A stretch of 64,000 nt of DNA from Anthoceros angustus (Eukaryota > Plantae > Anthocerotophyta): contig MU008217.1 of NCBI GenBank assembly GCA_010909165.1, forward strand, positions 1-64,000, read 5' to 3'. Made by a program: the position numbers and the translations under genes. Of this stretch, positions 1 through 27,224 are shown one piece after another (position 1 is the stretch's first letter; the number at the start of each line of letters is the position of its first letter). The notes under the pieces are model-generated. The model was not told the DNA's origin. It did not search any database and saw nothing but the letters and a program-made list of their open reading frames with translations.

Positions 1-611
1 CTTGATGAACTTTGTGGCGTGAACTAAGCAATGTCATGCCTAACACTTCAGCCCAAATGTGGTAACATGGTCATAGTTTTAACCTTATTAATGTTATGAA
101 TTGCGTGCTAAACTTACGTCAACTTAAGGCTGGCCTTGATTGCCACGAACCTCTTATGTTGAAGCTCACGATGGCCTCCCAAAACTGCTTCTTACTAAGG
201 GCTGTCCATGGCATTCAAACCTTCATCAAAAGGAGCCATTCGTATATCTAGTTTGCACACCAAATCTTTATCAAGGTGCCCAATATTGCAAGGTGCAAGC
301 GGCAATTAGGAGACCCCAATACTTTAGTGTAGATGAGACCATCCAATTTGTACACCTTTGACATAAAGAACTACTCATCATATTATGATTTCAAGGATGA
401 GCAATTTTACCGACCACTTATTGTTTGATAGATGTTCAATTTTACCTTTGACATAAAGAACTACTCATCATATTATGATTTCAAGGATGATTTCAAGGAC
501 TATCAAACTCGTGAGGCGGAAAAACAAAACCTAGACTTGTAGGATAAGAGGTTAGTCGTAGAGACTTTGCGTTGTGGAATAGCAGGTTTGACCTACTTTG
601 GGCTTTTCTTG

Positions 612-810
612 TGAATACATAAGCATTGGGATTCTCATCTTATCTCCATTTTCAAATTTCATGGCCAAACGGAAAAAACATTACTACAATAATATAAATT
701 AAACCACTAGCACAACAAAAATTAAGGCATAATAAAGCAAAAAAGAATAAAACATAAAACATAAAACAAAACAAAACCTCAAACAACGGCAAAACAAAAC
801 AATAGAGAAC
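612..810 (-). other. Intron remnant downstream of ALY exon 2
   Basis: GT start, then very T-rich minus strand (GTTTTGTTTTATGTTTTATG...). The lower boundary is approximate. Confidence 0.6.
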
Positions 811-880
811 CTTGTGCATCTTTTGAATCTTTAGACATTTGGCTTGGGCTCGATATCGATCCCCGCTCCTTCTTGTCTGG
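811..880 (-). pseudogene. ALY: ALY/REF exon 2 remnant (AGIDIEPKPNV*), followed by a GT donor
   Basis: 866-831 reads A G I D I E P K P N V stop. It aligns with plant ALY AGIETGTKLY[IV]S, and each mismatched codon is one base from a plausible ancestral codon. It ends ...CACAAG|GTTCTC at 810, like ...EDIK|GT. Copies also lie near 5640, 6200, 10740, 14800 and 16381. Confidence 0.65.
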
Positions 881-2190
881 TGGTAACACAATATCGGCCC
901 TTCTTGTTCTTCTTGTTTCCACCTTTAAATTTGCATACTAAATTGTGCTAACATGAAGTCTTGCGATATGCAATCTCGCATCACTTGACCATGGTACATC
1001 TAGCTCGCATCCAAGACCTCTGCACTTTTGACTATGGCGGAGGTCGTTGGTTTGCCATCAAGATCCAAGTGGTTGTTTGGCTTGGAAAGGATCTTTGGTA
1101 GAGACCGCATATTGATTATGACTTTTCACTCCATGGATGATCGCCTCCAGTTATGAAGGCTAGGTCTATGTTACAGACGACTCGGTTATATATCAATCGA
1201 TCTTACACCATTGCAATGGAAGATTAAGAAGGAGAAGTTACCGCTTTCTTTTATTGAGCTTGATCAAGTCAACGGCTTTTCTTTCATGGGGATGAATTTG
1301 TGGTGTTTAGCCCTCGTTCATGCATTTCATTAACATTATTGATTGATTGAAGATTATTTGTCTTGTTTGAATTTTACCTTTGCATTCGTCTAGACCATTT
1401 TACCGCAATCTATGTAGTTGCCATATTTCAATCCTATGACGAAGATCCGTCCTTAGTGGACTTGAATAAATTTCTTCTTCTTCCTCTTCATCTTCTTCAT
1501 TTGTTCTTCTTGTTCTTCTTGTTCTTCTTGTTCTTCTTCTTCCTCTTCATCTTCTTCATTTGTTCTTCTTGTTCTTCTTGTTCTTCTTCTTCCTCTTCAT
1601 CTTCTTCTCTTCTTCTTCTTCTTACAGTTATTAATTGTATTTAGAAAACTATGAAACTTCTTCACCTCTAGGTATTGTATGTATACATGTTTAGTATAGT
1701 GATTATTTTCACTAGCATAGTAAATAAAAATTATTTATTTAATTATTTATGTATGCTATTCTTTGCAACAACAAAGAAACATACAACCATATTACATACA
1801 TATCAGGCCCTTCTTGTTTCCACCTTTAAATTTGCATACTGACTAAATTGTGCTAACATGAAGTCTTGCGATATGCAATCTCGCATCACTTGACCATGGT
1901 ACACATCTAGCTCCGCATCCAAGACCTCTGCACTTTTGACTATGGCGGAGGTGGTTGGCTACCTCCTCTTCCTATAACATGTGCCGCCACACTCCCATTT
2001 GGGGTCGTTGGTTTGCCATCAAGATCAAACAACGGCAAAACAATAGAGACCGCATATTGATTATGACTTTTCACTCCATGGATGATCGCCTCCAGTTATG
2101 AAGGCTAGGTCTATGTTACAGACGACTCGGTTATATATCAATCGATCTTACACCATTGCAATGGAAGATTAAGAAGGAGAAGTTACCGCT

Positions 2191-2370
2191 TTCTTTCATG
2201 GGGATGAATTTGTGGTGTTTAGCCCTCGTTCATGCATTTCATTAACATTATTGATTGAAGATTATTTGTCTTGTTTGAATTTCTTTCATGGGGATGAATT
2301 TGTGGTGTTTAGCCCTCGTTCATGCATTTCATTAACATTATTGATTGATTGAAGATTATTTGTCTTGTTT
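2191..2370 (+). repeat. ~90-bp loop repeat (TTCTTTCATGGGGATGAATTTGTGG...GTCTTGTTTGAAT)
   Basis: TTCTTTCATG at 2191 and 2281. Repeated at ~36535-36770, 46615-46750 and 57235-57385. Confidence 0.88.
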
Positions 2371-2882
2371 GAATTTTACCTTTGCATTCGTCTAGACCAT
2401 TTTACCGCAATCTATGGAGTTGCCATATTTCAATCCTATGACGAAGATCCGTCCTTAGTGGACTTGAATAAATTTCTTCTTCTTCTCTTCATCTTCTTCA
2501 TTTGTTCTTCTTGTTCTTCTTGTTCTTCTTCTTCCTCTTCATCTTCTTCATTTGTTCTTCTTGTTCTTCTTGTTCTTCTTCTTCCTCTTCATCTTCTTCA
2601 TTTGTTCTTCTTCTTCTTCTTACAGTTATTAATTGTATTTAGAAAACTATGAAACTTCTTCACCTCTAGGTATTGTATGTATACATGTTTAGTATAGTGA
2701 TTATTTTCACTAGCATAGTAAATAAAAATTATTTATTTAATTATTTATGTATGCTATTCTTTGCAACAACAAAGAAACATACAACCATATTACATACATA
2801 TCAGGCCCTTCTTGTTTCCACCTTTAAAATTTGCATACTGACTAAATTGTGCTAACATGAAGTCTTGCGATATGCAATCTCG

Positions 2883-2936
2883 CATCACTTGACCATGGTA
2901 CACATCTAGCTCCGCATCCAAGACCTCTGCACTTTT
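2883..2936 (-). pseudogene. ALY: ALY/REF C-terminal motif remnant (KSAEVLDAELDVYHGQVM)
   Basis: Matches the REF-C/UAP56-binding motif pattern SAExLDAxLDxYH..M of plant ALY proteins. About 13 copies occur in the window (e.g. 15918-15959, 60718-60759), some frameshifted (e.g. ~985-1030). Confidence 0.88.
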
Positions 2937-3037
2937 GACTATGGCGGAGGTGGTTGGCTACCTCCTCTTCCTATAACATGTGCCGCCACACTCCCATTTG
3001 GGGTCGTTGGTTTCGCTTGTATTATCATTCGCATATC

Positions 3038-3108
3038 AATTGCCTCAATGGTCATTGGTTTGCCATCAAGATCAAGTGGTTGTTTGGCTTAGTGGTTCGA
3101 CGAGCTTT
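3038..3108 (-). pseudogene. ALY: ALY/REF RRM C-terminal remnant (LDGKPMTIEAI)
   Basis: 3070-3038 reads LDGKPMTIEAI, like the plant ALY (YNNVQ)LDGKPMKIEI. In the GATCCAAGTGG variant (near 1062, 12072, 60895) the upstream frame gives KPNNHLDLDGKPM. Confidence 0.8.
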
Positions 3109-3179
3109 CTTTTATTGAGCTTGATCAAGTCATCCACATTCTTTTATTGAGCTTGATCAAGTCATGCTTATTCTTTGCA

Positions 3180-3384
3180 ACAAAGTCGGGCTCAAGTATC
3201 ACAAAGTTAGAGACTTCAACTTAAAGCGTGAGACAAGATCAAACAACAAAATCCAAATGTAAAATTGAAGTTCAAAACCGCCCAATCATATATCGACAAG
3301 CTAGGCACAAGTAACACTAAATATGCACAAGTTCCACTAAGTACTTAAGCATCTAACTGCACACCAAAGTGTGTAGTTACAAAC
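3180..3384 (-). other. Intron remnant downstream of ALY exon 1
   Basis: Begins with GT directly after the AAG codon and is T-rich on the minus strand. The lower boundary is approximate. Confidence 0.65.
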
Positions 3385-3567
3385 CTTGGAGGTTAAGTAG
3401 GGTGCGATTCGTCTTGCTACACGGTTATCTGTAAGTCGTGTGTCAACACCTCCGGAGCCCGCCTCGAGAACCTCTCGTCCTTGGCAGCGATTCGTCCGCA
3501 TTGGATGACGAGCACCGCCACGCCTTGCTTTCTTTTTATTGAGCTTGATCAAGTCATCAAGACTCAA
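3385..3567 (-). pseudogene. ALY: ALY/REF-family exon 1 remnant (REF-N motif to APY..K, followed by a GT donor)
   Basis: Reads LSLDDLIKLNKKKARRGG...RRIAPYLTSK. This resembles ALY/REF N-termini (MSLDD[IL]IK..., R/G-rich linker, APYxxxK). The frame starts at TTG, not ATG. AAG|GTTTGT donor at 3384, then T-rich sequence. This is the only uninterrupted copy. Confidence 0.85.
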
Positions 3568-4015
3568 TTTGCCTTCCTTAGCGCAACGGTTCCATACATA
3601 TGGTGACCGCCACCGTGGTCCTTTGCCTTAAGCTTGATCAAGTCATGCTTATTCTTTTATTGAGCTTGATCAAGTCATCAAGACTCAATTTGCCTTCCTT
3701 AGCAGCGGTTTCATGCATGTGGTGACCGCCACCGTGGTCCTTTGCCTTAAGCTTGATCAAGTCATCCACATTCTTTTATTGAGCTTGATCAAGTCATCAA
3801 GACTTAGATGACCACAACGTTGTCTTAGGTCCTCGAGCAACTCATAATTATTGCTTGGTCGCGAGGAATTCATTATTGCTTGGATGTTTGTGCTCTATAA
3901 TGTATTTAAAATTGGTCAATATGGATTATTTTTGTGAAAATATATTCAACCGTGGTGGTTGCTCTCAATATCCTAGGCAAATCAATTGTTAACCGTTGCA
4001 AGGATGAGCAATTTT

Positions 4016-4357
4016 ACCGACCACTTATTGTTTGATAGATGTTCAATTTTACCGACCACTTATTGTTTGATAGATGTTCAATTTTATAGACCACTTATTG
4101 TTTGATAGATGTTCAATTTTATGGACCACTTATTGTTTGATAGATGTTCAATTTTATAGACCACTTATTGTTTGATAGATGTTCAATTTCTTGACCACTT
4201 ATTGTTTGATAGATGTTCAATTTTACCGAGCACTTATTGTTTGATAGATGTTCAATTTTATAGACCACTTATTGTTTGATAGATGTTCAATTTTACGAGC
4301 ACTTATTGTTTGATAGATGTTCAATTTTATACACCACTTATTGTTTGATAGATGTTC
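4016..4357 (+). repeat. 35-bp tandem array (CCACTTATTGTTTGATAGATGTTCAATTTT plus a variable ~5 nt), 10 units
   Basis: Period 35 (4021, 4056, 4091, 4126, 4161). Ordered sister arrays at ~8925-9335, 13065-13475, 25745-26170, 50715-51065 and 62570-62920. It is also the most abundant module of the scrambled domain. Confidence 0.97.
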
Positions 4358-4503
4358 ACGAGGTGGAGCGTGGCGAGGATGAGCAACAACAAACCACTTC
4401 TTGTTAGGCTTTCCTAAGGTGCAGCGTTGCGAAGGTGGGCAACTCAACCAACCACTTAGATGATGGCTCCTTTATAGATGACCTTGAATACTAGATACTA
4501 TAC

Positions 4504-4700
4504 AGGATATTTGATATTTCCTTTCTAGCATCTTCAAATTGTTTTCTTGTGATAGGTACTATAAATGGATATTTGATATTTCCTTTATGGCACGTTCAAG
4601 TTGTTTTCTTGTAATACATACTATTAATGGATATATGATATTTCCTTTCCAGATGTTCTAATTGTTTTCTTGTGGTAGCGATATTATATTTATATTTGGT
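4504..4700 (+). repeat. Degenerate ~62-bp triplet (GGATAT[T/A]TGATATTTCCTTT...TTGTTTTCTTGT)
   Basis: Three copies with true substitutions. Re-expanded at ~29690-29940, 51220-51480, 55665-55865 and 59745-60065. Confidence 0.9.
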
Positions 4701-4919
4701 ATTTTCTTTTGTGGTATCTTTGAATTTCTTTCACGCTCGTATTGGTCCATCTTAGTAACAAAATGGCATGGTTGTGCAACTTAATAATTAAGTCTCCTCA
4801 CTTGCCTTCTTAATGTACAACATGTCAATTGAGAACTAAACTACACCAAATCTTGTAGGAATAGAAGTTGATGTGGGAAATAGTTACCACGTGATTAGAC
4901 AAAGGCATTTGTTTCGTTC

Positions 4920-7417
4920 CTTGATGAACTTTGTGGCGTGAACTAAGCAATGTCATGCCTAACACTTCAGCCCAAATGTGGTAACATGGTCATAGTTTTA
5001 ACCTTATTAATGTTATGAATTGCGTGCTAAACTTACGTCAACTTAAGGCTGGCCTTGATTGCCACGAACCTCTTATGTTGAAGCTCACGATGGCCTCCCA
5101 AAACTGCTTCTTACTAAGGGCTGTCCATGGCATTCAAACCTTCATCAAAAGGAGCCATTCGTATATCTAGTTTGCACACCAAATCTTTATCAAGGTGCCC
5201 AATATTGCAAGGTGCAAGCGGCAATTAGGAGACCCCAATACTTTAGTGTAGATGAGACCATCCAATTTGTACACCTTTGACATAAAGAACTACTCATCAT
5301 ATTATGATTTCAAGGATGATTTCAAGGACTATCAAACTCGTGAGGCGGAAAACAAAACCTAGACTTGTAGGATAAGAGGTTAGTCGTAGAGACTTTGCGT
5401 TGTGGAATAGCGAGGTTTGACCTACTTTGGGCTTTTCTTGTGAATACATAAGCATTGGGATTCTCATCTTATCTCCATTTTCAAATTTCATGGCCAAACG
5501 GAAAAAACATTACTACAATAATATAAATTAAACCACTAGCACAACAAAAATTAAGGCATAATAAAGCAAAAAAAGAATAAAACATAAAACATAAAACAAA
5601 ACAAAACCTCAAACAACGGCAAAACAATAGAGAACCTTGTGCATCTTTGAATCTTTAGACATTTGGCTTGGGCTCGATATCGATCCCCGCTCCTTCTTGT
5701 TAGGCTTTCCTAAGGTGCAGCGTTGCGGTGGGCAACTCAACCAACCACTTAGATGATGGCTCCTTTATAGATGACCACAACGTTGTCTTAGGTCCTCGAG
5801 CAACTCATAATTATTGCTTGGATGTTTGTGCTCTATAATGTATTTAAAATTGGTCAATATGGATTATTTTCACTAGCATAGTAAATAAAAATTATTTATG
5901 TATGCTATTCTTTGCAACAAAGTCTTGTAGGATAAGAGGTTAGTCGTAGAGACTTTGCGTTGTGGAATAGCGAGGTTTGACCTACTTTGGGCTTTTCTTG
6001 TGAATACATAAGCATTGGGATTCTCATCTTATCTCCATTTTCAAATTTCATGGCCAAACGGAAAAAACATTACTACAATAATATAAATTAAACCACTAGC
6101 ACAACAAAAATTAAGGCATAATAAAGCAAAAAAAGAATAAAACATAAAACATAAAACAAAACAAAACCTCAAACAACGGCAAAACAATAGAGAACCTTGT
6201 GCATCTTTTGAATCTTTAGACATTTGGCTTGGGCTCGATATCGATCCCCGCTCCTTCTTGTTCTTCTTCTTGTTAGGCTTTCCTAAGGTGCAAGCGGCAA
6301 TTAGGAGACCCCAATACTTTAGTGTAGATGAGACCATCCAATTTGTACACCTTTGACATAAAGAACTACTCATCATATTATGATTTCAAGGATGATTTCA
6401 AGGATGATTTCAAGGATGATTTCAAGGATGATTTCAAGGATGAGCAATTTTACCTTTGCATTCGTCTAGACCATTTTACCGAGCACTTATTGTTTGATAG
6501 ATGTTCAATTTTACCTTTGCATTCGTCTAGACCATTTTACCGAGCACTTATTGTTTGATAGATGTTCAATTTTATACACCACTTATTGTTTGATAGATGT
6601 TCAATTTTACCTTTGCATTCGTCTAGACCATTTTACCGAGCACTTATTGTTTGATAGATGTTCAATTTATGGACCACTTATTGTTTGATAGATGTTCAAT
6701 TTATGGACCACTTATTGTTTGATAGATGTTCAATTTTACCTTTGCATTCGTCTAGACCATTTTACCGACCACTTATTGTTTGATAGATGTTCAATTTTAC
6801 CGAGCACTTATTGTTTGATAGATGTTCAATTTATGGACCACTTATTGTTTGATAGATGTTCAATTTTACCTTTGCATTCGTCTAGACCATTTTACCGACC
6901 ACTTATTGTTTGATAGATGTTCAATTTTATACACCACTTGTGGCTGCAAAGGAGTTTCTCAATAGGCTAGAGGTCGATGTGGTGTTTAGCCCTCGTTCAT
7001 GCATTTCATTAACATTATTGATTATGACTTTTCACTCCATGGATGATCGCCTCCAGTTATGAAGGCTAGGTCTATGTTACAGACGACTCGGTTATATATC
7101 AATCGATCTTACACCATTGCAATGGAAGATTATTTGTCTTGTTTGAATTTTACCGACCACTTATTGTTTGAATTTCTTTCATGGGGATGAATTTGTGGTG
7201 TTTAGCCCTCGTTCATGCATTTCATTAACATTATTGATTGATTGAAGATTATTTGTCTTGTTTGAATTTTACCTTTGCATTCGTCTAGACCATTTTACCG
7301 CAATCTATGTAGTTGCCATATTTCAATCCTATGAAGATCCGTCCTTAGTGGACTTGAATAAATTTCTTCTTCTTCCTCTTCATCTTCTTCATTTGTTCTT
7401 CTTGTTCTTCTTGTTCT

Positions 7418-7449
<32 letters not shown>

Positions 7450-9900
7450 TTCTTCTTCTTCTTCTTCTTCTTCTTCTTCTTCTTCTTCTTCTTCATCTTC
7501 TTCTTCTTCTTCCTCTTCATCTTCTTCTTCTCTTCTTCTTCTTCTTACAGTTATTAATTGTATTTAGAAAACTATGAAACTTCTTCACCTCTAGGTATTG
7601 TATGTATACATGTTTAGTATAGTGATTATTTTTCACTAGCATAGTAAATAAAAATTATTTATTTAATTATTTATGTATGCTATTCTTTGCAACAACAAAG
7701 AAACATACAACCATATTACATACATATCGGCCCTTCTTGTTTCCACCTTTAAAATTTGCATACTAAATTGTGCTAACATGAAGTCTTGCGATATGCAATC
7801 TCGCATCACTTGACCATGGTACATCTAGCTCGCATCCAAGACCTCTGCACTTTTGACTATGGCGGAGGTCGTTGGCTACCTCCTCTTCCTATAACATGTG
7901 CCACACTCCCATTTGGGGTCGTTGGTTTGCCGCTTGTATTATCATTCGCATATCAATTGCCTCAATGGTCATTGGTTTGCCATCAAGATCAAGTGGTTGT
8001 TTGGCTTAGTGGTTCGACGAGCTTTCTGCGATATGCAATCTCGCATCACTTGACCATGGTACACATCTAGCTCGCATCCAAGACCTCTGCACTTTTGACT
8101 ATGGCGGAGGTCGTTGGTTTGCCATCAAGATCAAACAACAAAATCCAAATGTAAAATTGAAGTTCAAAACCGCCCAATCATATATCGACAAGCTAGGGCA
8201 CAAGTAACACTAAATATGCACAAGTTCCACTAAGTACTTAAGCATCTAACGCACACCAAAGTGTGTAGTTACAAACCTTGGAGGTTAAGTAGGGTGCGAT
8301 TCGTCTTGCTACAGTTATTAATTGTATTTAGAAAACTATGAAACTTCTTCACCTCTAGGTATTGTATGTATACATGTTTAGTATAGTGATTATTTTTCAC
8401 TAGCATAGTAAATAAAAATTATTTATGTATGCTATTCTTTTATTGAGCTTGATCAAGTCATCAAGACTCAATTTGCCTTCCTTAGCAGCGGTTCCATACA
8501 TATGGTGACCGCCACCGTGGTCCTTTGCCTTAAGCTTGATCAAGTCATGCTTATTCTTTTATTGAGCTTGATCAAGTCATCAAGACTCAATTTGCCTTCC
8601 TTAGCAGCGGTTTCATGCATGTGGTGACCGCCACCGTGGTCCTTTGCCTTAAGCTTGATCAAGTCATCCACATTCTTTTATTGAGCTTGATCAAGTCATC
8701 AAGACTTAGATGACCACAACGTTGTCTTAGGTCCTCGAGCAACTCATAATTATTGCTTGGTCGCGAGGAATTCATTATTGCTTGGATGTTTGTGCTCTAT
8801 AATGTATTTAAAATTGGTCAATATGGATTATTTTTGTGAAAATATATTCAACCGTGGTGGTTGCTCTCAATATCCTAGGCAAATCAATTGTTAACCGTTG
8901 CAAGGATGATTTCAAGGATGAGCAATTTTACCGACCACTTATTGTTTGATAGATGTTCAATTTTACCGACCACTTATTGTTTGATAGATGTTCAATTTTA
9001 TAGACCACTTATTGTTTGATAGATGTTCAATTTTATGGACCACTTATTGTTTGATAGATGTTCAATTTTATAGACCACTTATTGTTTGATAGATGTTCAA
9101 TTTTACCACTTATTGTTTGATAGATGTTCAATTTTATAGACCACTTATTGTTTGATAGATGTTCAATTTTAGACCACTTATTGTTTGATAGATGTTCAAT
9201 TTTACCGAGCACTTATTGTTTGATAGATGTTCAATTTTATAGACCACTTATTGTTTGATAGATGTTCAATTTTACCACTTATTGTTTGATAGATGTTCAA
9301 TTTTATGGACCACTTATTGTTTGATAGATGTTCACGAGGTGGAGCGTGGCGAGGATGAGCAACAACAAACCACTTCTTGTTAGGCTTTCCTAAGGTGCAG
9401 CGTTGCGAAGGTGGGCAACTCAACCAACCACTTAGATGATGGCTCCTTTATAGATGACCTTGAATACTAGATACTATACAGGATATTTGATATTTCCTTT
9501 CTAGCATCTTCAAATTGTTTTCTTGTGATAGGTACTATAAATGGATATTTGATATTTCCTTTATGGCACGTTCAAGTTGTTTTCTTGTAATACATACTAT
9601 TAATGGATATATGATATTTCCTTTCTAGCATCTTCAAATTGTTTTCTTGTGGTAGCGATATTATATTTATATTTGGTATTTTCTTTTGTGGTATCTTTGA
9701 ATTTCTTTCACGCTCGTATTGGTCCATCTTAGTAACAAAATGGCATGGTTGTGCAACTTAATAATTAAGTCTCCTCACTTGCCTTCTTAATGTACAACAT
9801 GTCAATTGGAGAACTAAACTACACCAAATCTTTGTAGGAATAGAAGTTGATGTGGGAAATAGTTACCACACGTGATTAGACAAAGGCATTTGTTTCGTTC
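4920..9900 (+). repeat. Macro-unit 2 (4981 bp)
   Basis: Same start word at 4920, next at 9901. Same terminal modules (35-bp array, ~62-bp triplet, TTCACGCTCG...GTTTCGTTC). Internal order partly rearranged. Confidence 0.9.
5383..5445 (-). pseudogene. ALY: Possible ALY exon 3 remnant (KVG...RYS...YD)
   Basis: Follows the intron-2 remnant. GTA GGT (5425-5420), CGC TAT TCC (5412-5404) and TAC GAC (5388-5383) echo plant ALY EVGxLKRYSIHYD, but a frameshift is needed. Weak. Confidence 0.4.
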
Positions 9901-12900
9901 CTTGATGAACTTTGTGGCGTGAACTAAGCAATGTCATGCCTAACACTTCAGCCCAAATGTGGTAACATGGTCATAGTTTTAACCTTATTAATGTTATGAA
10001 TTGCGTGCTAAACTTACGTCAACTTAAGGCTGGCCTTGATTGCCACGAACCTCTTATGTTGAAGCTCACGATGGCCTCCCAAAACTGCTTCTTACTAAGG
10101 GCTGTCCATGGCATTCAAACCTTCATCAAAAGGAGCCATTCAGATATCTAGTTTCATGCATTTCATTAACATTATTGATTGAAGATTATTTGTCTTGTTT
10201 GAATTTCTTTCACGCTCGTATTGGTCCATCTTAGTAACAAAATGGCATGGTTGTGCAACTTAACAAAACCACTTCTTGTTAGGCTTTCCTAAGGTGCAAG
10301 CGGCAATTAGGAGACCCCAATACTTTAGTGTAGATGAGACCATCCAATTTGTACACCTTTGACATAAAGAACTACTCATCATATTATGATTTCAAGGATG
10401 ATTTCAAGGACTATCAAACTCGTGAGGCGGAAAACAAAACCTAGACTTGTAGGATAAGAGGTTAGTCGTAGAGACTTTGCGTTGTGGAATAGCGAGGTTT
10501 GACCTACTTTGGGCTTTTCTTGTGAATACATAAGCATTGGGATTCTCATCTTATCTCCATTTTCAAATTTCATGGCCAAACGGAAAAAACATTACTACAA
10601 TAATATAAATTAAACCACTAGCACAACAAAATTAAGGCATAATAAAGCAAAAAAAGAATAAAACATAAAACATAAAACATAAAACATAAAACATAAAACA
10701 AAACAAAACCTCAAACAACGGCAAAACAATAGAGAGAACCTTGTGCATCTTTTGAATCTTTAGACATTTGGCTTGGGCTCGATATCGATCCCCGCTCCTT
10801 CTTGTCTGGTGGTAACACAATATCAAGGCGATGCTCGCCGTGCATTGAACTTGAGAATTTATGGTCTTGGTAATGACATTGTTGCACCACTTGTGGCTGC
10901 AAAGGAGTTTCTCAATAGGCTAGAGGTCGATGTGGTGTTTAGCCCTCGTTCATGCATTTCATTAACATTATTGATTGATTGATTGATTGATTGATTATGA
11001 CTTTTCACTCCATGGATGATCGCCTCCAGTTATGAAGGCTAGGTCTATGTTACAGACGACTCGGTTATATATCAATCGATCTTACACCATTGCAATGGAA
11101 GATTAAGAAGGAGAAGTTACACCTTTGACATAAAGAACTACTCATCATATTATGATTTCAAGGATGAGCAACTTAACAAAACCACTTCTTGTTGTTCTTC
11201 TTCTCTTCTTCTTCATCTTCTTCATCTTCTTCTTTCATGGGGATGAATTTGTGGTGTTTAGCCCTCGTTCATGCATTTCATTAACATTATTGATTGATTG
11301 AAGATTATTTGTCTTGTTTGAATTTTACCTTTGCATTCGTCTAGACCATTTTACCGCAATCTATGTAGTTGCCATATTTCAATCCTATGAAGATCCGTCC
11401 TTAGTGGACTTGAATAAATTTCTTCTTCTTCCTCTTCTTCTTGTTCTTCTTGTTCTTCTTCTTCTTCATCTTCTTCTTCTTCTTCTTCTTCTTCTTCTTC
11501 CTCTTCATCTTCTTCATCTTCTTCTTCTTCTTCTTACAGTTATTAATTGTATTTAGAAAACTATGAAACTTCTTCACCTCTAGGTATTGTATGTATACAT
11601 GTTTAGTATAGTGATTATTTTCACTAGCATAGTAAATAAAAATTATTTATTTAATTATTTATGTATGCTATTCTTTGCAACAACAAAGAAACATACAACC
11701 ATATTACATACATATGGTGACCGCCACCGTGGTCCTTTGCCTTAAGCTTGATCAAGTCATCCACATTCTTTTATTGAGCTTGATCAAGTCATGCTTATTC
11801 TTTTATTGAGCTTGATCAAGTCATCCACATTCTTTTATTGAGCTTGATCAAGTCATCCACATTCTTTTATTGAGCTTGATCAAGTCATCCACATTCTTTT
11901 ATTGAGCTTGATCAAGTCATGCTTATTCTTTTATTGAGCTTGATCAAGTCATGCTTATTCTTCTTCCTCTTCCTATAACATGTGCCACACTCCCATTTGG
12001 GGTCGTTGGTTTGCCGCTTGTATTATCATTCGCATATCAATTGCCTCAATGGTCATTGGTTTGCCATCAAGATCCAAGTGGTTGTTTGGCTTAGTGGTTC
12101 GACGAGCTTTTGCAACAACAAAATCCAAATGTAAAATTGAAGTTCAAAACCGCCCAATCATATATCGACAAGCTAGGGCACAAGTAACACTAAATATGCA
12201 CAAGTTCCACTAAGTACTTAAGCATCAAGTCATCAAGATCAAACAACAAAATCCAAATGTAAAATTGAAGTTCAAAACCGCCCAATCATATATCGACAAG
12301 CTAGGCACAAGTAACACTAAATATGCACAAGTTCCACTAAGTACTTAAGCATCTAACGCACACCAAAGTGTGTAGTTACAAACCTTGGAGGTTAAGTAGG
12401 GTGCGATTCGTCTTGCTACAGTTATTAATTGTATTTAGAAAACTATGAAACTTCTTCACCTCTAGGTATTGTATGTATACATGTTTAGTATAGTGATTAT
12501 TTTCACTAGCATAGTAAATAAAAATTATTTATGTATGCTATTCTTTGCAACAACAAACCACTTCTTGTTCTTCTTCTTTTATTGAGCTTGATCAAGTCAT
12601 CAAGACTCAATTTGCCTTCCTTAGCAGCAGCGGTTCCATACATATGGTGACCGCCACCGTGGTCCTTTGCCTTAAGCTTGATCAAGTCATGCTTATTCTT
12701 TTATTGAGCTTGATCAAGTCATCAAGACTCAATTTGCCTTCCTTAGCAGCGGTTTCATGCATGTGGTGACCGCCACCGTGGTCCTTTGCCTTAAGCTTGA
12801 TCAAGTCATCCACATTCTTTTATTGAGCTTGATCAAGTCATCAAGACTTAGATGACCACAACGTTGTCTTAGGTCCTCGAGCAACTCATAATTATTGCTT

Positions 12901-14040
12901 GGTCGCGAGGAATTCATTATTGCTTGGATGTTTGTGCTCTATAATGTATTTAAAATTGGTCAATATGGATTATTTTTGTGAAAATATATTCAACCGTGGT
13001 GGTTGCTCTCAATATCCTAGGCAAATCAATTGTTAACCGTTGCAAGGATGATTTCAAGGATGAGCAATTTTACGAGCACTTATTGTTTGATAGATGTTCA
13101 ATTTTACCGACCACTTATTGTTTGATAGATGTTCAATTTTATAGACCACTTATTGTTTGATAGATGTTCAATTTTATGGACCACTTATTGTTTGATAGAT
13201 GTTCAATTTTATAGACCACTTATTGTTTGATAGATGTTCAATTTTAGACCACTTATTGTTTGATAGATGTTCAATTTTAGACCACTTATTGTTTGATAGA
13301 TGTTCAATTTTATAGACCACTTATTGTTTGATAGATGTTCAATTTTACGAGCACTTATTGTTTGATAGATGTTCAATTTTATACACCACTTATTGTTTGA
13401 TAGATGTTCAATTTTACCACTTATTGTTTGATAGATGTTCAATTTTATACACCACTTATTGTTTGATAGATGTTCACGAGGTGGAGCGTGGCGAGGATGA
13501 GCAACAACAAACCACTTCTTGTTAGGCTTTCCTAAGGTGCAGCGTTGCGAAGGTGGGCAACTCAACCAACCACTTAGATGATGGCTCCTTTATAGATGAC
13601 CTTGAATACTAGATACTATACAGGATATTTGATATTTCCTTTCTAGCATCTTCAAATTGTTTTCTTGTGATAGGTACTATAAATGGATATTTGATATTTC
13701 CTTTATGGCACGTTCAAGTTGTTTTCTTGTAATACATACTATTAATGGATATATGATATTTCCTTTCTAGCATCTTCAAATTGTTTTCTTGTGGTAGCGA
13801 TATTATATTATATTTGGTATTTTCTTTTGTGGTATCTTTGAATTTCTTTCACGCTCGTATTGGTCCATCTTAGTAACAAAATGGCATGGTTGTGCAACTT
13901 AATAATTAAGTCTCCTCACTTGCCTTCTTAATGTACAACATGTCAATTGAGAACTAAACTACACCAAATCTTTGTAGGAATAGAAGTTGATGTGGGAAAT
14001 AGTTACCACACGTGATTAGACAAAGGCATTTGTTTCGTTC
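9901..14040 (+). repeat. Macro-unit 3 (4140 bp)
   Basis: Start word at 9901, next at 14041. Shorter, with internal deletions and a rare insert at ~10820-10930. Confidence 0.9.
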
Positions 14041-14897
14041 CTTGATGAACTTTGTGGCGTGAACTAAGCAATGTCATGCCTAACACTTCAGCCCAAATGT
14101 GGTAACATGGTCATAGTTTTAACCTTATTAATGTTATGAATTGCGTGCTAAACTTACGTCAACTTAAGGCTGGCCTTGATTGCCACGAACCTCTTATGTT
14201 GAAGCTCACGATGGCCTCCCAAAACTGCTTCTTACTAAGGGCTGTCCATGGCATTCAAACCTTCATCAAAAGGAGCCATTCGTATATCTAGTTTGCACAC
14301 CAAATCTTTATCAAGGTGCCCAATATTGCAAGGTGCAAGCGGCAATTAGGAGACCCCAATACTTTAGTGTAGATGAGACCATCCAATTTGTACACCTTTG
14401 ACATAAAGAACTACTCATCATATTATGATTTCAAGGATGATTTCAAGGACTATCAAACTACGTGAGGCGGAAAACAAAACCTAGACTTGTAGGATAAGAG
14501 GTTAGTCGTAGAGACTTTGCGTTGTGGAATAGCGAGGTTTGACCTACTTTGGGCTTTTCTTGTGAATACATAAGCATTGGGATTCTCATCTTATCTCCAT
14601 TTTCAAATTTCATGGCCAAACGGAAAAAACATTACTACAATAATATAAATTAAACCACTAGCACAACAAAAATTAAGGCATAATAAAGCAAAAAAAGAAT
14701 AAAACATAAAACATAAAACAAAACAAAACCTCAAACAACAAAAATTAAGGCATAATAAAGCAAAAAAAGAATAAAACATAAAACAAAACAATAGAGAGAA
14801 CCTTGTGCATCTTTTGAATCTTTAGACATTTGGCTTGGGCTCGATATCGATCCCCGCTCCTTCTTGTCTGGTGGTAACACAATATCGGCGGAGGTCG

Positions 14898-15060
14898 TTG
14901 GTTTGCCGCTTGTATTATCATTCGCATATCAATTGCCTCAATGGTCATTGGTTTGCCGCTTGTATTATCATTCGCATATCAATTGCCTCAATGGTCATTG
15001 GTTTGCCGCTTGTATTATCATTCGCATATCAATTGCCTCAATGGTCATTGGTTTGCCGCT
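14898..15060 (+). repeat. 50-bp tandem repeat (TTGGTTTGCCGCTTGTATTATCATTCGCATATCAATTGCCTCAATGGTCA)
   Basis: Period 50 (14901, 14951, 15001, 15051). Also at ~16540-16735 and ~30375-30535. Confidence 0.95.
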
Positions 15061-15905
15061 TGGAAAGGATCTTTGGTAGAGACCGCATATTGATTATGAC
15101 TTTTCACTCCATGGATGATCGCCTCCAGTTATGAAGGCTAGGTCTATGTTACAGACGACTCGGTTATATATCAATCGATCTTACACCATTGCAATGGAAG
15201 ATTAAGAAGGAGAAGTTACACCTTTGACATAAAGAACTACTCATCATATTATGATTTCAAGGATGAGCAATTTTACCGAGCACTTATTGTTTGAATTTCT
15301 TTCATGGGGATGAATTTGTGGTGTTTAGCCCTCGTTCATGCATTTCATTAACATTATTGATTGATTGAAGATTATTTGTCTTGTTTGAATTTTACCTTTG
15401 CATTCGTCTAGACCATTTTACCGCAATCTATGTAGTTGCCATATTTCAATCCTATGACGAAGATCCGTCCTTAGTGGACTTGAATAAATTTCTTCTTCTT
15501 CCTCTTCATCTTCTTCATTTGTTCTTCTTGTTCATTTGTTCTTCTTGTTCTTCTTCTTCCTCTTCATCTTCTTCATTTGTTCTTCTTGTTCTTCTTGTTC
15601 TTCTTCTTCCTCTTCATCTTCTTCATCTGCATCTTCTTCTTCTTACAGGTTATTAATTGTATTTAGAAAACTATGAAACTTCTTCACCTCTAGGTATTGT
15701 ATGTATACATGTTTAGTATAGTGATTATTTTTCACTAGCATAGTAAATAAAAATTATTTATTTAATTATTTATGTATGCTATTCTTTGCAACAACAAAGA
15801 AACATACAACCATATTACATACATATCAGGCCCTTCTTGTTTCCACCTTTAAATTTGCATACAGCTAAATTGTGCTAACATGAAGTCTTGCGATATGCAA
15901 TCTCG

Positions 15906-16440
15906 CATCACTTGACCATGGTACACATCTAGCTCCGCATCCAAGACCTCTGCACTTTTGACTATGGCGGAGGTCGTTGGCTACCTCCTCTTCCTATAAC
16001 ATGTGCCGCCACACTCCCATTTGGGGTCGTTGGTTTGCCGCTTGTATTATCATTCGCATATCAATTGCCTCAATGGTCATTGGTTTGCCATCAAGATCAA
16101 GTGGTTGTTTGGCTTAGTGGTTCGACGAGCTTTCTGCGAAGAGAACCACAATAGCAGGTTTGACCTACTTTGGGCTTTTCTTGTGAATACATAAGCATTG
16201 GGATTCTCATCTTATCTCCATTTTCAATTTCATGGCCAAACGGAAAAACATTACTACAATAATATAAATTAAACCACTAGCACAACAAAAATTAAGGCAT
16301 AATAAAGCAAAAAAAGAATAAAACATAAAACATAAAACAAAACAAAACCTCAAACAACAAAACAAAACAATAGAGAGAACCTTGTGCATCTTTTGAATCT
16401 TTAGACATTTGGCTTGGGCTCGATATCGATCCCCGCTCCT
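15906..16440 (-). pseudogene. ALY: Collinear ALY remnant: exon 2, intron, VG, AIVV, LDGKPM, REF-C
   Basis: Exon 2 at 16440-16381, GT at 16380, T-rich intron, KVG ~16170, AIVV ~16155, LDGKPM 16095-16078, KSAEVLDAELDVYH 15959-15918. The pieces are in native gene order. Confidence 0.75.
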
Positions 16441-17569
16441 TCTTGTTCTTCTTGTCTGGTGGTAACATGGTCATAGTTTTAACCTTATTAATGTTATGAA
16501 GGCTAGGTCTATGTTACAGACGACTCGGTTATATATCAATTGCCTCAATGGTCATTGGTTTGCCGCTTGTATTATCATTCGCATATCAATTGCCTCAATG
16601 GTCATTGGTTTGCCGCTTGTATTATCATTCGCATATCAATTGCCTCAATGGTCATTGGTTTGCCGCTTGTATTATCATTCGCATATCAATTGCCTCAATG
16701 GTCATTGGTTTGCCGCTTGTATTATCATTCGCATATTGATTATGACTTTTCACTCCATGGATGATCGCCTCCAGTTATGAAGGCTAGGTCTATGTTACAG
16801 ACGACTCGGTTATATATCAATCGATCTTACACCATTGCAATGGAAGATTAAGAAGGAGAAGTTACACCTTTGACATAAAGAACTACTCATCATATTATGA
16901 TTTCAAGGATGATTTCAAGGATGATTTCAAGGATGATTTCAAGGATGATTTCAAGGATGAGCAATTTTACCACTTATTGTTTGATAGATGTTCAATTTTA
17001 CCACTTATTGTTTGATAGATGTTCAATTTTATGGACCACTTATTGTTTGATAGATGTTCAATTTTACCTTTGCATTCGTCTAGACCATTTTACCGCAATC
17101 TATGTAGTTGCCATATTTCAATCCTATGACGAAGATCCGTCCTTAGTGGACTTGAATAAATTTCTTCTTCTTCCTCTTCATCTTCTTCATTTGTTCTTCT
17201 TGTTCTTCTTGTTCTTCTTCTTCTTCCTCTTCATCTTCTTCATTTGTTCTTCTTGTTCTTCTTGTTCTTCTTCTTCCTCTTCATCTTCTTCATCTTCTTC
17301 TTCTTCTTACAGTTATTAATTGTATTTAGAAAACTATGAAACTTCTTCACCTCTAGGTATTGTATGTATACATGTTTAGTATAGTGATTATTTTCACTAG
17401 CATAGTAAATAAAAATTATTTATTTAATTATTTATGTATGCTATTCTTTGCAACAACAAAGAAACATACAACCATATTACATACATATCAGGCCCTTCTT
17501 GTTTCCACCTTTAAATTTGCATACTGACTAAATTGTGCTAACATGAAGTCTTGCGATATGCAATCTCGC

Positions 17570-18110
17570 ATCACTTGACCATGGTACACATCTAGCTCCG
17601 CATCCAAGACCTCTGCACTTTTGACTATGGCGGAGGTCGTTGGCTACCTCCTCTTCCTATAACATGTGCCGCCACACTCCCATTTGGGGTCGTTGGTTTG
17701 CCGCTTGTATTATCATTCGCATATCAATTGCCTCAATGGTCATTGGTTTGCCATCAAGATCAAGTGGTTGTTTGGCTTAGTGGTTCGACGAGCTTTCTGC
17801 GAAGAGAACCACAATAGCAGATAGGGTTGCAACAAAGTCGGGCTCAAGTATCACAAAGTTAGAGACTTCAACTTAAAGCGTGAGACAAGATCAAACAACA
17901 AAATCCAAATGTAAAATTGAAGTTCAAAACCGCCCAATCATATATCGACAAGCTAGGGCACAAGTAACACTAAATATGCACAAGTTCCACTAAGTACTTA
18001 AGCATCTAACGCACACCAAAGTGTGTAGTTACAAACCTTGGAGGTTAAGTAGGGTGCGATTCGTCCGCATTGGATGACGAGCACCGCCACGCCTTGCTTT
18101 CTTTCATGGG
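17570..18110 (-). pseudogene. ALY: ALY remnant: internally deleted exon 1, intron, SAIVV, LDGKPM, REF-C
   Basis: Exon 1 ends at 18037 with GT at 18036. SAIVV at 17821-17807 resembles ALY TAEVV. The RRM end and REF-C follow. Confidence 0.7.
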
Positions 18111-22015: not shown

Positions 22016-24857
22016 TCTATGTAGTTGCCATATTTCAATCCTATGACGAAGATCCGTCCTTAGTGGACTTGAATAAATTTCTTCTTCTTCATCTTCTTCA
22101 TCTTCTTCTTCATCTTCTTCATTTGTTCTTCTTGTTCTTCTTGTTCTTCTTGTTCTTCTTGTTCTTCTTCCTCTTCATCTTCTTCTTGTTAGGCTTTCCT
22201 AAGGTGCAAGCGGCAATTAGGAGACCCCAATACTTTAGTGTAGATGAGACCATCCAATTTGTACACCTTTGACATAAAGAACTACTCATCATATTATGAT
22301 TTCAAGGATGAGCAATTTTACCGAGCACTTATTGTTTGATAGATGTTCACGAGGTGGAGCGTGGCGAGGATGAGCAATTTTACCGCAATCTATGTAGTTG
22401 CCATATTTCAATCCTATGACGAAGATCCGTCCTTAGTGGACTTGAATAAATTTCTTCTTCATTTGTTCTTCTTCATCTTCTTCATTTGTTCTTCTTCTCT
22501 TCTTCTTCCTCTTCATCTTCTTCATTTGTTCTTCTTGTTCTTCTTCTCTTCTTCTTCTTCTTGTTCTTCTTCTTCATTTGTTCTTCTTGTTCTTCTTCTT
22601 CCTCTTCATCTTCTTCTTCATCTTCTTCTTCTTGTTCTTCTTCTCTTCTTCTTGTTCTTCTTCATTTGTTCTTCTTCATTTGTTCTTCTTCCTCTTCATC
22701 TTCTTCTTGTTCTTCTTGTTAGGCTTTCCTAAGGTGCAAGCGGCAATTAGGAGACCCCAATACTTTAGTGTAGATGAGACCATCCAATTTGTACACCTTT
22801 GACATAAAGAACTACTCATCATATTATGATTTCAAGGATGATTTCAAGGATGATTTCAAGGATGATTTCAAGGATGATTTCAAGGATGATTTCAAGGATG
22901 AGCAATTTTACCGAGCACTTATTGTTTGATAGATGTTCAATTTTATACACCACTTATTGTTTGATAGATGTTCAATTTTACCTTTGCATTCGTCTAGACC
23001 ATTTTACCGAGCACTTATTGTTTGATAGATGTTCAATTTATGGACCACTTATTGTTTGATCGCGAGGAATTCATTATTGCTTGGTCGCGAGGAATTCATT
23101 ATTGCTTGGTCGCGAGGAATTCATTATTGCTTGGATGTTTGTGCTCTATAATGTATTTAAAATTGGTCAATATGGATTATTTTTCACTAGCATAGTAAAT
23201 AAAAATTATTTATGTATGCTATTCTTTGCAACAACAAAGAAACATACAACCATATTACATACATATGGTGACCGCCACCGTGGTCCTTTGCCTTAAGCTT
23301 GATCAAGTCATCCACATTCTTTTATTGAGCTTGATCAAGTCATGCTTATTCTTTTATTGAGCTTGATCAAGTCATGCTTATTCTTTTATTGAGCTTGATC
23401 AAGTCATCAAGACTCAATTTGCCTTCCTTAGCAGCGGTTTCATGCATGTGGTGACCGCCACCGTGGTCCTTTGCCTTAAGCTTGATCAAGTCATCAAGAC
23501 TCAATTTGCCTTCCTTAGCAGCGGTTCCATACATATCGGCCCTTCTTGTTCTTCTTGTTCTTCTTCATCTTCTTCATTTGTTCTTCTTCTCTTCTTCTTC
23601 CTCTTCATCTTCTTCATTTGTTCTTCTTGTTCTTCTTCTCTTCTTCTTCTTGTTCTTCTTCTTCTTCATTTGTTCTTCTTGTTCTTCTTCTTCCTCTTCA
23701 TCTTCTTCTTCATCTTCTTCTTCTTGTTCTTCTTCTCTTCTTCTTGTTCTTCTTCATTTGTTCTTCTTCATTTGTTCTTCTTCTCTTCATCTTCTTCTTG
23801 TTCTTCTTGTTCTTCTTGTTAGGCTTTCCTAAGGTGCAAGCGGCAATTAGGAGACCCCAATACTTTAGTGTAGATGAGACCATCCAATTTGTACACCTTT
23901 GACATAAAGAACTACTCATCATATTATGATTTCAAGGATGATTTCAAGGATGATTTCAAGGATGATTTCAAGGATGATTTCAAGGATGATTTCAAGGATG
24001 AGCAATTTTACCGAGCACTTATTGTTTGATAGATGTTCAATTTTATAGACCACTTATTGTTTGATAGATGTTCAATTTTACCTTTGCATTCGTCTAGACC
24101 ATTTTACCGAGCACTTATTGTTTGATAGATGTTCAATTTTACCTTTGCATTCGTCTAGACCATTTTACCGAGCACTTATTGTTTGATAGATGTTCAATTT
24201 TACCGAGCACTTATTGTTTGATAGATGTTCAATTTTACCTTTGCATTCGTCTAGACCATTTTACCGACCACTTATTGTTTGATAGATGTTCAATTTTACC
24301 GCAATCTATGTAGTTGCCATATTTCAATCCTATGACGAAGATCCGTCCTTAGTGGACTTGAATAAATTTCTTCTTCATTTGTTCTTCTTGTTCTTCTTCA
24401 TTTGTTCTTCTTGTTCTTCTTGTTCTTCTTCATCTTCTTCTCTTCTTCTTGTTTCCACCTTTAAATTTGCATACTAAATTGTGCTAACATGAAGTCTTGC
24501 GATATGCAATCTCGCATCACTTGACCATGGTACACATCTAGCTCCGCATCCAAGACCTCTGCACTTTTGACTATGGCGGAGGTCGTTGGCTACCTCCTCT
24601 TCCTATAACATGTGCCGCCACACTCCCATTTGGGGTCGTTGGCTACCTCCTCTTCCTATAACATGTGCCGCCACACTCCCATTTGGGGTCGTTGGTTTGC
24701 CATCAAGATCAAACAACAAAGAAACATACAACCATATTACATACATATCGGCCCTTCTTGTTCTTCTTCCTCTTCATCTTCTTCTCTTCTTCTCTTCTTC
24801 TTCATTTGTTCTTCTTCATTTGTTCTTCTTCCTCTTCATCTTCTTCTTGTTCTTCTT

Positions 24858-25015
24858 CTTCCTCTTCCTATAACATGTGCCGCCACACTCCCATTTGGGG
24901 TCGTTGGCTACCTCCTCTTCCTATAACATGTGCCGCCACACTCCCATTTGGGGTCGTTGGCTACCTCCTCTTCCTATAACATGTGCCGCCACACTCCCAT
25001 TTGGGGTCGTTGGTT
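24858..25015 (+). repeat. 53-bp tandem repeat (GGCTACCTCCTCTTCCTATAACATGTGCCGCCACACTCCCATTTGGGGTCGTT)
   Basis: ORF starts spaced 53 nt apart (24612/24665; 28465/28518). Runs also at ~24590-24700 and ~28450-28600. Confidence 0.93.
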
Positions 25016-27224
25016 TGCCATCAAGATCAAACAACAAAAATTAAGGCATAATAAAGCAAAAAAAGAATAAAACATAAAACAAAACCTTGGAGGTTAAGTA
25101 GGGTGCGATTCGTCTTGCTACACCACTTATTGTTTGATAGATGTTCAATTTTACCTTTGCATTCGTCTAGACCATTTTACCGAGCACTTATTGTTTGATA
25201 GATGTTCAATTTTACCTTTGCATTCGTCCGCATTGGATGACGAGCACCGCCACGCCTTGCTTTCTTTTATTGAGCTTGATCAAGTCATCAAGACTCAATT
25301 TGCCTTCCTTAGCAGCAGCGGTTCCATACATATGGTGACCGCCACCGTGGTCCTTTGCCTTAAGCTTGATCAAGTCATGCTTATTCTTTTTATTGAGCTT
25401 GATCAAGTCATCAAGACTCAATTTGCCTTCCTTAGCAGCAGCGGTTTCATGCATGTGGTGACCGCCGCCGTGGCCCTTTGCCTTAAGCTTGATCAAGTCA
25501 TCCACATTCTTTTTATTGAGCTTGATCAAGTCATCAAGACTTAGATGACCACAACGTTGTCTTAGGTCCTCGAGCAACTCATAATTATTGCTTGGTCGCG
25601 AGGAATTCATTATTGCTTGGATGTTTGTGCTCTATAATGTATTTAAAATTGGTCAATATGGATTATTTTTGTGAAAATATATTCAACCGTGGTGGTTGCT
25701 CTCAATATCCTAGGCAAATCAATTGTTAACCGTTGCAAGGATGAGCAATTTTACCGACCACTTATTGTTTGATAGATGTTCAATTTTACCGACCACTTAT
25801 TGTTTGATAGATGTTCAATTTTATAGACCACTTATTGTTTGATAGATGTTCAATTTATGGACCACTTATTGTTTGATAGATGTTCAATTTTATAGACCAC
25901 TTATTGTTTGATAGATGTTCAATTTTACCGACCACTTATTGTTTGATAGATGTTCAATTTTACCGAGCACTTATTGTTTGATAGATGTTCAATTTTATAG
26001 ACCACTTATTGTTTGATAGATGTTCAATTTTACCGAGCACTTATTGTTTGATAGATGTTCAATTTTATACACCACTTATTGTTTGATAGATGTTCAATTT
26101 ATGGACCACTTATTGTTTGATAGATGTTCAATTTTATACACCACTTATTGTTTGATAGATGTTCAATTTTATAGATGACCACAACGTTGTCTTAGGTCCT
26201 CGAGCAACTCAACCAACCACTTAGATGATGGCTCCTTTATAGATGACCTTGAATACTAGATACTATACAGGATATTTGATATTTCCTTTCTAGCATCTTC
26301 AAATTGTTTTCTTGTGATAGGTACTATAAATGGATATTTGATATTTCCTTTATGGCACGTTCAAGTTGTTTTCTTGTAATACATACTATTAATGGATATA
26401 TGATATTTCCTTTCTAGCATCTTCAAATTGTTTTCTTGTGGTAGCGATATTATATTTATATTTGGTATTTTCTTTTGTGGTATCTTTTGAATTTCTTCTT
26501 CATTTGTTCTTCTTCTTGTTTCCACCTTTAAATTTGCATACTAAATTGTGCAACTTAATAATTAAGTCTCCTCACTTGCCTTCTTAATGTACAACATGTC
26601 AATTGGAGAACTAAACTACACCAAATGTAAAATTGAAGTTCAAAACCGCCCAATCATATATCGACAAGCTAGGCACAAGTAACACTAAATATGCACAAGT
26701 TCCACTAAGTACTTAAGCATCTAACTGCACACCAAAGTGTGTAGTTACAAACCTTGGAGGTTAAGTAGGGTGCGATTCGTCCGCATTGGATGACGAGCAC
26801 CGCCACGCCTTGCTTTCTTTCATGGGGATGAATTTGTGGTGTTTAGCCCTCGTTCATGCATTTCATTAACATTATTGATTGATTGATTGAAGATTATTTG
26901 TCTTGTTTGAATTTTACCGAGCACTTATTGTTTGATAGATGTTCAATTTATGGACCACTTATTGTTTGATAGATGTTCAATTTTATGTTGAAGCTCACGA
27001 TGGCCTCCCAAAACTGCTTCTTACTAAGGGCTGTCCATGGCATTCAAAACCTTCATCAAAAGGAGCCATTCGTATATCTAGTTTCATGCATGTGGTGACC
27101 GCCACCGTGGTCCTTTGCCTTAAGCTTGATCAAGTCATCAAGACTCAATTTGCCTTCCTTAGCAGCGGTTTCATGCATGTGGTGACCGCCACCGTGGTCC
27201 TTTGCCTTAAGCTTGATCAAGTCA

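Follow-up and report, generated by a model that had tools for sequence, protein, structure and literature searches.

A probable ALY/REF gene relic inside a long-monomer tandem repeat assigned to Anthoceros angustus

The first 64,000 nucleotides of contig MU008217.1 in the Anthoceros angustus assembly GCA_010909165.1, analysed as a whole and referred to here as the window, consist of pieces of one repeat unit (window positions 1-4919), which tile 98.6% of the 64 kb in a single orientation throughout. On the minus strand of this unit lies a stretch that, judged from exon-by-exon comparison, is a real relic derived from a gene for an ALY/REF mRNA-export adaptor. The window very probably represents part of a long-monomer tandem repeat (macrosatellite) with a unit of ~4-5 kb, which carries this relic in a truncated and frame-broken form; the relic makes up only a part of this unit and is most likely dead DNA.

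Parts of the relic on the minus strand

The features of the relic and of the unit are collected in Table 1. All four minus-strand peptides on which the original prediction was built were recovered, namely LSLDDLIKLNKK...APYLTSK followed by GT (3567-3385), the piece at 866-811, LDGKPMTIEAI (3070-3038) and KSAEVLDAELDVYHGQVM (2936-2883). In sister copies (MYGTAAK...), the ATG of the 119-bp units is in frame with the UAP56-binding motif, and in the tabulated copy it is off-frame by a single base. The exon 1 relic at 3385-3567 is the sole complete single-frame copy within the window. The intron-1-like stretch behind exon 1 has had its 3' end supplanted here by the 32-bp units, which multiply the UAP56-binding motif once more, and across the window the pattern DD[LIV][IV]K was matched 107 times, 100% of the matches being on the minus strand. 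In the 3' part, GRGG alone remains of the Arg/Gly-rich C-terminal region, the C-terminal motif is off-frame from the GRGG stretch in all copies, and the distance from LDGKPM to this motif amounts to ~44 codons vs ~96 in the ALY locus L018 introduced below.

Table 1. Features of the repeat unit, the relic and related tandem units (window coordinates).
Feature	Position	Strand	Basis or remark
119-bp tandem units, 2.3 copies, each with ATG and N-terminal UAP56-binding motif (..KEGKLSLDDLIKLNK..)	3534..3804	-	Tandem Repeats Finder, translation
ALY exon 1 relic: N-terminal UAP56-binding motif, Arg/Gly-rich linker, ..NRVARRIAPYLTSK, AAG-GT end	3385..3567	-	tblastn
Intron-1-like stretch, begins GTTTGT, T 41%	3170..3384	-	composition
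32-bp tandem units, 2.2 copies, encode DDLIKLNKR (UAP56-binding motif multiplied)	3107..3176	-	Tandem Repeats Finder
ALY exon-4-like block: RRM end (..KPNNHLDLDGKPMTIEAI..) and short GRGG stretch, stop-terminated	2942..3088	-	tblastn with L086 exon 4 on sister copy 12113-12012
C-terminal UAP56-binding motif (KSAEVLDAELDVYHGQVM)	2883..2936	-	tblastn with L085 last exon; Pfam FoP_duplication
Second RRM-end/GRGG/C-motif block, internally deleted, via internal unit duplication	1884..2023	-	sequence comparison, translation
Third RRM-end block, more deleted: LDLDGKP fused directly to ..SAEVLDAS	976..1083	-	translation
AGIDIEPKPNV* piece, claimed as exon 2	811..866	-	without support as ALY-derived
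240-nt GT...AG stretch, T 42%, between exon-1 remnant and exon-4-like block of a sister copy	17797..18036	-	
50-bp and 53-bp tandem units	14893-15062, 16533-16736, 30369-30533; 24581-25013, 28448-28601		
Repeat unit	1..4919	+	same-orientation pieces across window; public DNA contigs rejoin 4914/4916 to position 1

Analysis of the middle part of the gene by tblastn with plant exons and shuffled controls revealed nothing above noise for ALY exons 2-3 (WxHD motif, RNP2, RNP1) anywhere in the window, and a search among 149 open reading frames (ORFs) gave 0 matches to RRM_1. Upstream of the exon-4-like block in the 17.8-kb copy, two candidates, an RNP1 relic reading 'SAIVVLFA' and, alternatively, a match to ..DIRELFAE.., stayed at noise level and were not retained. 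A 23-nt GT...AG segment that lies between GRGG and the C-terminal motif would mend the frame of one copy, and it was not retained either, being of insufficient length for an intron.

Identity of the relic and its exon-1 boundary

To obtain comparators, a degenerate DNA pattern of the ALY N-terminal motif was run against metagenome contigs, which afforded 120 loci including cDNA-like full-length ALYs (L037, L053, L062, L066, L067, L109) and plant-type genomic ALY genes (L073, L118, L086, L069/L085, L004/L061, L021/L033/L083); L076, a human-gut metagenome contig, was excluded. Locus L018 was recognized as a genuine ALY from its match to THO complex subunit 4 in PDB (E 4e-34) and from the Pfam domains RRM_1 and FoP_duplication. 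In this plant locus, exons 2 to last are contiguous (1171-1794, a 208-aa frame) and lie ~800 bp from exon 1, so that the contig represents a copy that was processed in part or, alternatively, a transcript from which intron 1 had not been removed.

Plant ALY exons were then compared with the window by tblastn, one exon at a time. Residues 7-54 of L073 exon 1 aligned to 3567-3385 (33.9 bits, E 3e-6), a site that was also matched by L069 exon 1 (E 4e-5). Exon 4 of L086, which encodes the RRM end, aligned to the sister copy at 12113-12012 (27.3 bits, E 1e-3), and the last exon of L085 matched the C-terminal motif with 70.6% identity over 17 aa (26.6 bits, E 2e-3). The scores of these three matches were reached in 0/200 dinucleotide-preserving randomisations of the window, for which null means of 16-17 bits and maxima of 22-23 bits were obtained. 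The three matches lie on a single strand, in N-to-C order and within a span of <700 bp, and non-plant ALYs match the same three sites in unchanged order. The original prediction had expected an ALY alignment over four motifs, and these three bear it out; the fourth, at 811-866, does not. Exons 2 and 3 of plant ALY genes failed to align with this piece even at E<=100 with 2-letter words, its PDB search returned no ALY and unrelated chance matches only, and its position, 2 kb further downstream than the C-terminal motif, is out of gene order.

Profile and structure searches of the individual pieces were in agreement with this assignment. For the N-terminal piece, REF2 provided the only named PDB matches, located at the N-terminal motif, and FYTT was the top Pfam family, while the C-terminal piece had FoP_duplication as its Pfam top match (E 0.046). 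The FYTT and FoP_duplication families both bear the UAP56-binding motif of ALYREF (PMC5095910). As the Pfam E-values of 0.046-0.074 do not rise above the noise of a blind scan, in which 45 families scored E<0.1 over 149 ORFs, these matches were counted as agreeing and as nothing beyond that. The RRM-end block alone returned no ALY in PDB or Pfam, and the chance PDB matches for this block and for the 811-866 piece comprised xylose isomerase, ribosomal protein S7 and winged bean albumin. Look-alikes in the atlas, of which the named ones were FoP_duplication and FYTT, all scored <0.9 and were kept as leads only. A protein-seeded scan of metagenome contigs found no relative, and looking up two called ORFs for their encoding contigs returned no record.

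The exon-1 end of the relic speaks to how the gene was copied. In L073, L118 and L086, exon 1 ends with APY, three further residues and K, the boundary reading AAG-GT in phase 0, and the relic ends with APYLTSK at a boundary that reads AAG-GTTTGT, with codon and phase identical to these three loci; in L069, exon 1 ends two codons earlier. The predicted agreement of the intron position with plant ALY1/2-type genes (APY plus 4 residues, AAG-GT, phase 0) was thus confirmed, the boundary having been compared with plant ALY loci from metagenome contigs. The T content rises to 41% over the 215 nt at 3170-3384 vs 20% in exon 1. In the sister copy, the stretch at 18036-17797 starts with GT and terminates in a pyrimidine-rich ..CGCAG end, and its excision would fuse exon 1 and the exon-4-like block in frame; we infer that it is an intron. 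As a retrocopy would have exon 1 fused to the WxHD exon, the 5' part of the relic appears to stem from genomic DNA, and the AAG-GT boundary at the family intron position argues for a genomic, non-processed copy, at least for this 5' part.

The 3' half is uninformative as to a genomic or processed copy, since no intron is visible from LDGKPM to the C-terminal motif; reading on past the 3' end revealed no run of poly(A). The original prediction had taken GT donors followed by T-rich introns as the mark of a genomic copy, a view that holds for the boundary at 3385 with its 41% T and that receives no help from the supposed K-GT donor of 811-866 or from the 3' half. As a separate observation, exon 1 of the ALY3/4-type plant loci L004, L065 and L116 ends in AAG followed by GCAAGC, apparently a conserved GC donor of intron 1.

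Array structure, lesions and proposed history

The window displays the kilobase units, arranged head to tail on one strand, that characterize a macrosatellite, and contigs of a public DNA run that link 4914/4916 back to position 1 represent head-to-tail junctions. A regular period was not found. The marker for the exon-1 end is spaced at 4.1-5.7 kb in the first 18 kb only and does not occur at all over the 34 kb from 26.8 to 61.2 kb. For the most part this region is made up of motif units, of arrays with periods of 12, 35 and 61/62 bp and of (TTC)n of up to ~95 copies, and it is far from a regular satellite. Tandem Repeats Finder returned 293 rows for the window, with short arrays nested in one another. 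Rather than a regular satellite, the window forms a mosaic in which pieces of a single unit have been rearranged on the same strand; the term 'satellite' of the original prediction is apt for the kilobase head-to-tail units and not for a regular array.

Over most of the unit, word depth summed over the contigs of the public DNA run was 1,700-16,000 vs 7-18 in contigs continuing into unlike DNA. A depth in the thousands fits a high-copy repeat, contig depth itself not being a copy number, and the run may be the source sample of the assembly itself. Of the 4,919 bases of the unit, ~1,170 (24%) are traceable to ALY if the motif repeats, the intron-like stretch and the two internal partial duplicates are counted in, and the rest comprises runs of (TTC)n, arrays with periods of 12, 35 and 62 bp, and unassigned sequence. 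A search of Rfam matched no family. The proposal that the monomer as such derives from an ALY gene was therefore overstated, as ~24% of a ~4.9-kb unit is traceable, and sound with regard to the relic itself.

Five collinear copies of the relic were located at ~3.4, 8.3, 12.4, 18.0 and 61.2 kb, with exons 2-3 missing from all of them and a common frame break ahead of the C-terminal motif in all full copies. Where properly aligned, the copies are ~99% identical and differ nearly exclusively by indels and by different junction partners. Because the truncation is shared and the identity ~99%, either truncation of the gene preceded amplification of the unit or exchange keeps the copies alike. The visible lesions are deletions and frameshifts. 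Of the predicted order of events, decay by substitution followed by amplification, the later amplification is thus supported by the shared truncation and the ~99% identity, and the decay by substitution is not, as deletions and frameshifts are seen in its place.

Apart from the complete exon 1 at 3385-3567, the remaining exon-1 copies have either lost 83 bp or been cut short. The deleted segment is flanked by two 10-bp direct repeats (GACGAATCGC) at 3496-3487 and 3413-3404, and such repeats around 83 bp are a signature of slippage or microhomology deletion. Three parts of the relic have given rise to minisatellites, namely the N-terminal motif (32/119-bp units), the LDGKPM piece (50-bp units) and the GRGG piece (53-bp units), the latter two being exact pieces of the relic (the LDGKPM/TIEAIDMRM segment and the PNGSVAAHVIGRGGSQ segment). 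Two open frames on the minus strand, at 28945-29289 (115 aa) and 25215-25631 (139 aa), contain two to five UAP56-binding motifs each, and the former additionally holds LDGKP and the C-terminal motif; both are probably chance products of rearrangements.

From these features, the following history may be proposed. A DNA-level duplicate of an ALY gene would have lost its middle exons by deletion, and unequal exchange or replication slippage would then have amplified the truncated locus. Deletions between short direct repeats may later have scrambled the array, as exemplified by the 83-bp loss from exon 1 between 10-bp repeats, while nested tandem duplication would have turned three pieces of the relic into the 32/119-bp, 50-bp and 53-bp minisatellites. 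The relic would accordingly be passenger DNA with no function of its own, and features of a working gene were not encountered: stops and frame breaks are common to the copies, and a presumed-RNA run, one small run of uncertain kind, gave only 34-42 nt scraps on the unit and no RNA contigs.

Several observations weigh against this account. The exhaustive search of protein representatives with exon 1 found no ALY and one spurious bacterial repeat protein, and the support therefore rests on the targeted comparisons. For ~76% of the unit no origin was traced, and the deletion history is itself inferred. Public short-read contigs contain 1-2 extra bases at the homopolymers at 3072 (all depth), 3013 and 2999 (about a quarter each), and because homopolymer lengths vary, some of the small frame breaks (1-2 nt) may reflect variation among copies or errors of the assembly, an explanation that does not apply to the large deletions. 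The dead status is thus not proven for every copy in the genome, and the RNA evidence comes from a single small run of uncertain kind.

The variable homopolymers also feature in a rival reading, according to which the unit encodes a 'mini-ALY' family, still or once in use and ampliconic, whose two-exon spliced, RRM-less protein of UAP56-binding motifs could titrate UAP56. Its case draws on the 240-nt GT...AG stretch whose excision joins exon 1 and the exon-4-like block in frame, on sister copies with an in-frame ATG before the motif and on the open frames of 115-139 aa with several motifs. Such an in-frame join is, however, expected by chance in 1/3 of cases, a single complete exon 1 is left in 64 kb, the C-terminal motif is off-frame in all copies and no RNA contigs cover the unit in the small presumed-RNA run, so that we consider a mini-ALY family very unlikely. 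If such a family did exist and were one of several nuclear-regulator genes amplified as macrosatellites in this genome, the pattern would hint at genomic conflict or at an ampliconic system on a sex or accessory chromosome of a bryophyte. Pack-MULE, Helitron and CACTA-type elements capture host-gene fragments composed of exon plus intron, and an element of this type may have picked up the ALY fragment ahead of its tandem amplification. The untraced ~76% of the unit would leave room for such a carrier. However, at E<=0.1 the 149 ORF representatives contained no transposase, helicase or reverse-transcriptase domain, a search for inverted repeats of >=18 bp found none within the unit, and every piece has the same orientation, which makes transposon capture, in our judgement, distinctly improbable.

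Finally, the motifs might be a chance likeness in low-complexity repeats or stem from another gene with a UAP56-binding motif, of the UIF/UIEF or CHTOP type. The noise-level Pfam values and the atlas scores below 0.9 would be compatible with this, and the N-terminal motif by itself fails to separate ALY from UIF. The exon-1 alignment, however, covers exon 1 in full, with NRV.R.APY and the end of the exon included, the LDGKPM.IE strand and the SAE.LDAELD.YH ending are ALY features, and three collinear matches carry scores that none of the 200 shuffles reached; we regard this explanation as extremely unlikely. A truncated, frame-broken ALY/REF relic inside a scrambled macrosatellite hence remains the preferred reading.

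Comparison with known systems

With plant ALY1/2-type genes (THO complex subunit 4) the relic has in common the N- and C-terminal UAP56-binding motifs, the Arg/Gly linker ending in ..NR..R.APY, the codon, phase and AAG-GT of the exon-1 end, the LDGKPM.IE end of the RRM and the ..YH..M ending. Unlike these genes, it is devoid of WxHD, RNP2 and RNP1, its RGG region is apparently reduced to a few residues, its frames are broken, its N-terminal motif has been multiplied by 119-bp and 32-bp tandem duplication and no transcripts were seen.

Gene relics inside macrosatellites are a phenomenon of known kind, to which the present case adds a member. Gene-bearing macrosatellites have been reviewed for mammals, for example D4Z4 with its DUX4 retrogene (PMC5687341, PMC3018141), and the likeness to this type lies in kilobase head-to-tail units, each with its own copy of a reading frame that stems from a host gene. 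The retrogene in D4Z4 lacks introns and has kept its frame intact, whereas the relic has kept an intron boundary and is truncated and broken; unlike D4Z4, the present array is moreover heavily scrambled and contains nested minisatellites.

Long-monomer plant satellites have been traced to retrotransposons (PMC7004042, PMC3648361), and kilobase-scale monomers, nested short tandem repeats and complex arrays are found here as well. In contrast to those satellites, no transposon domain was found in the present unit, and the one source that could be recognised for it is a protein-coding gene of the host. A plant tandem repeat with kilobase monomers would thereby be documented as traced in part to a host gene with an intact intron boundary, not to a retrotransposon, with exon fragments shown as the seeds of minisatellites. 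Anthoceros assemblies have been stated to lack long tandem arrays (PMC8075897), and long arrays such as the present one bear on this statement if the window belongs to a hornwort genome.

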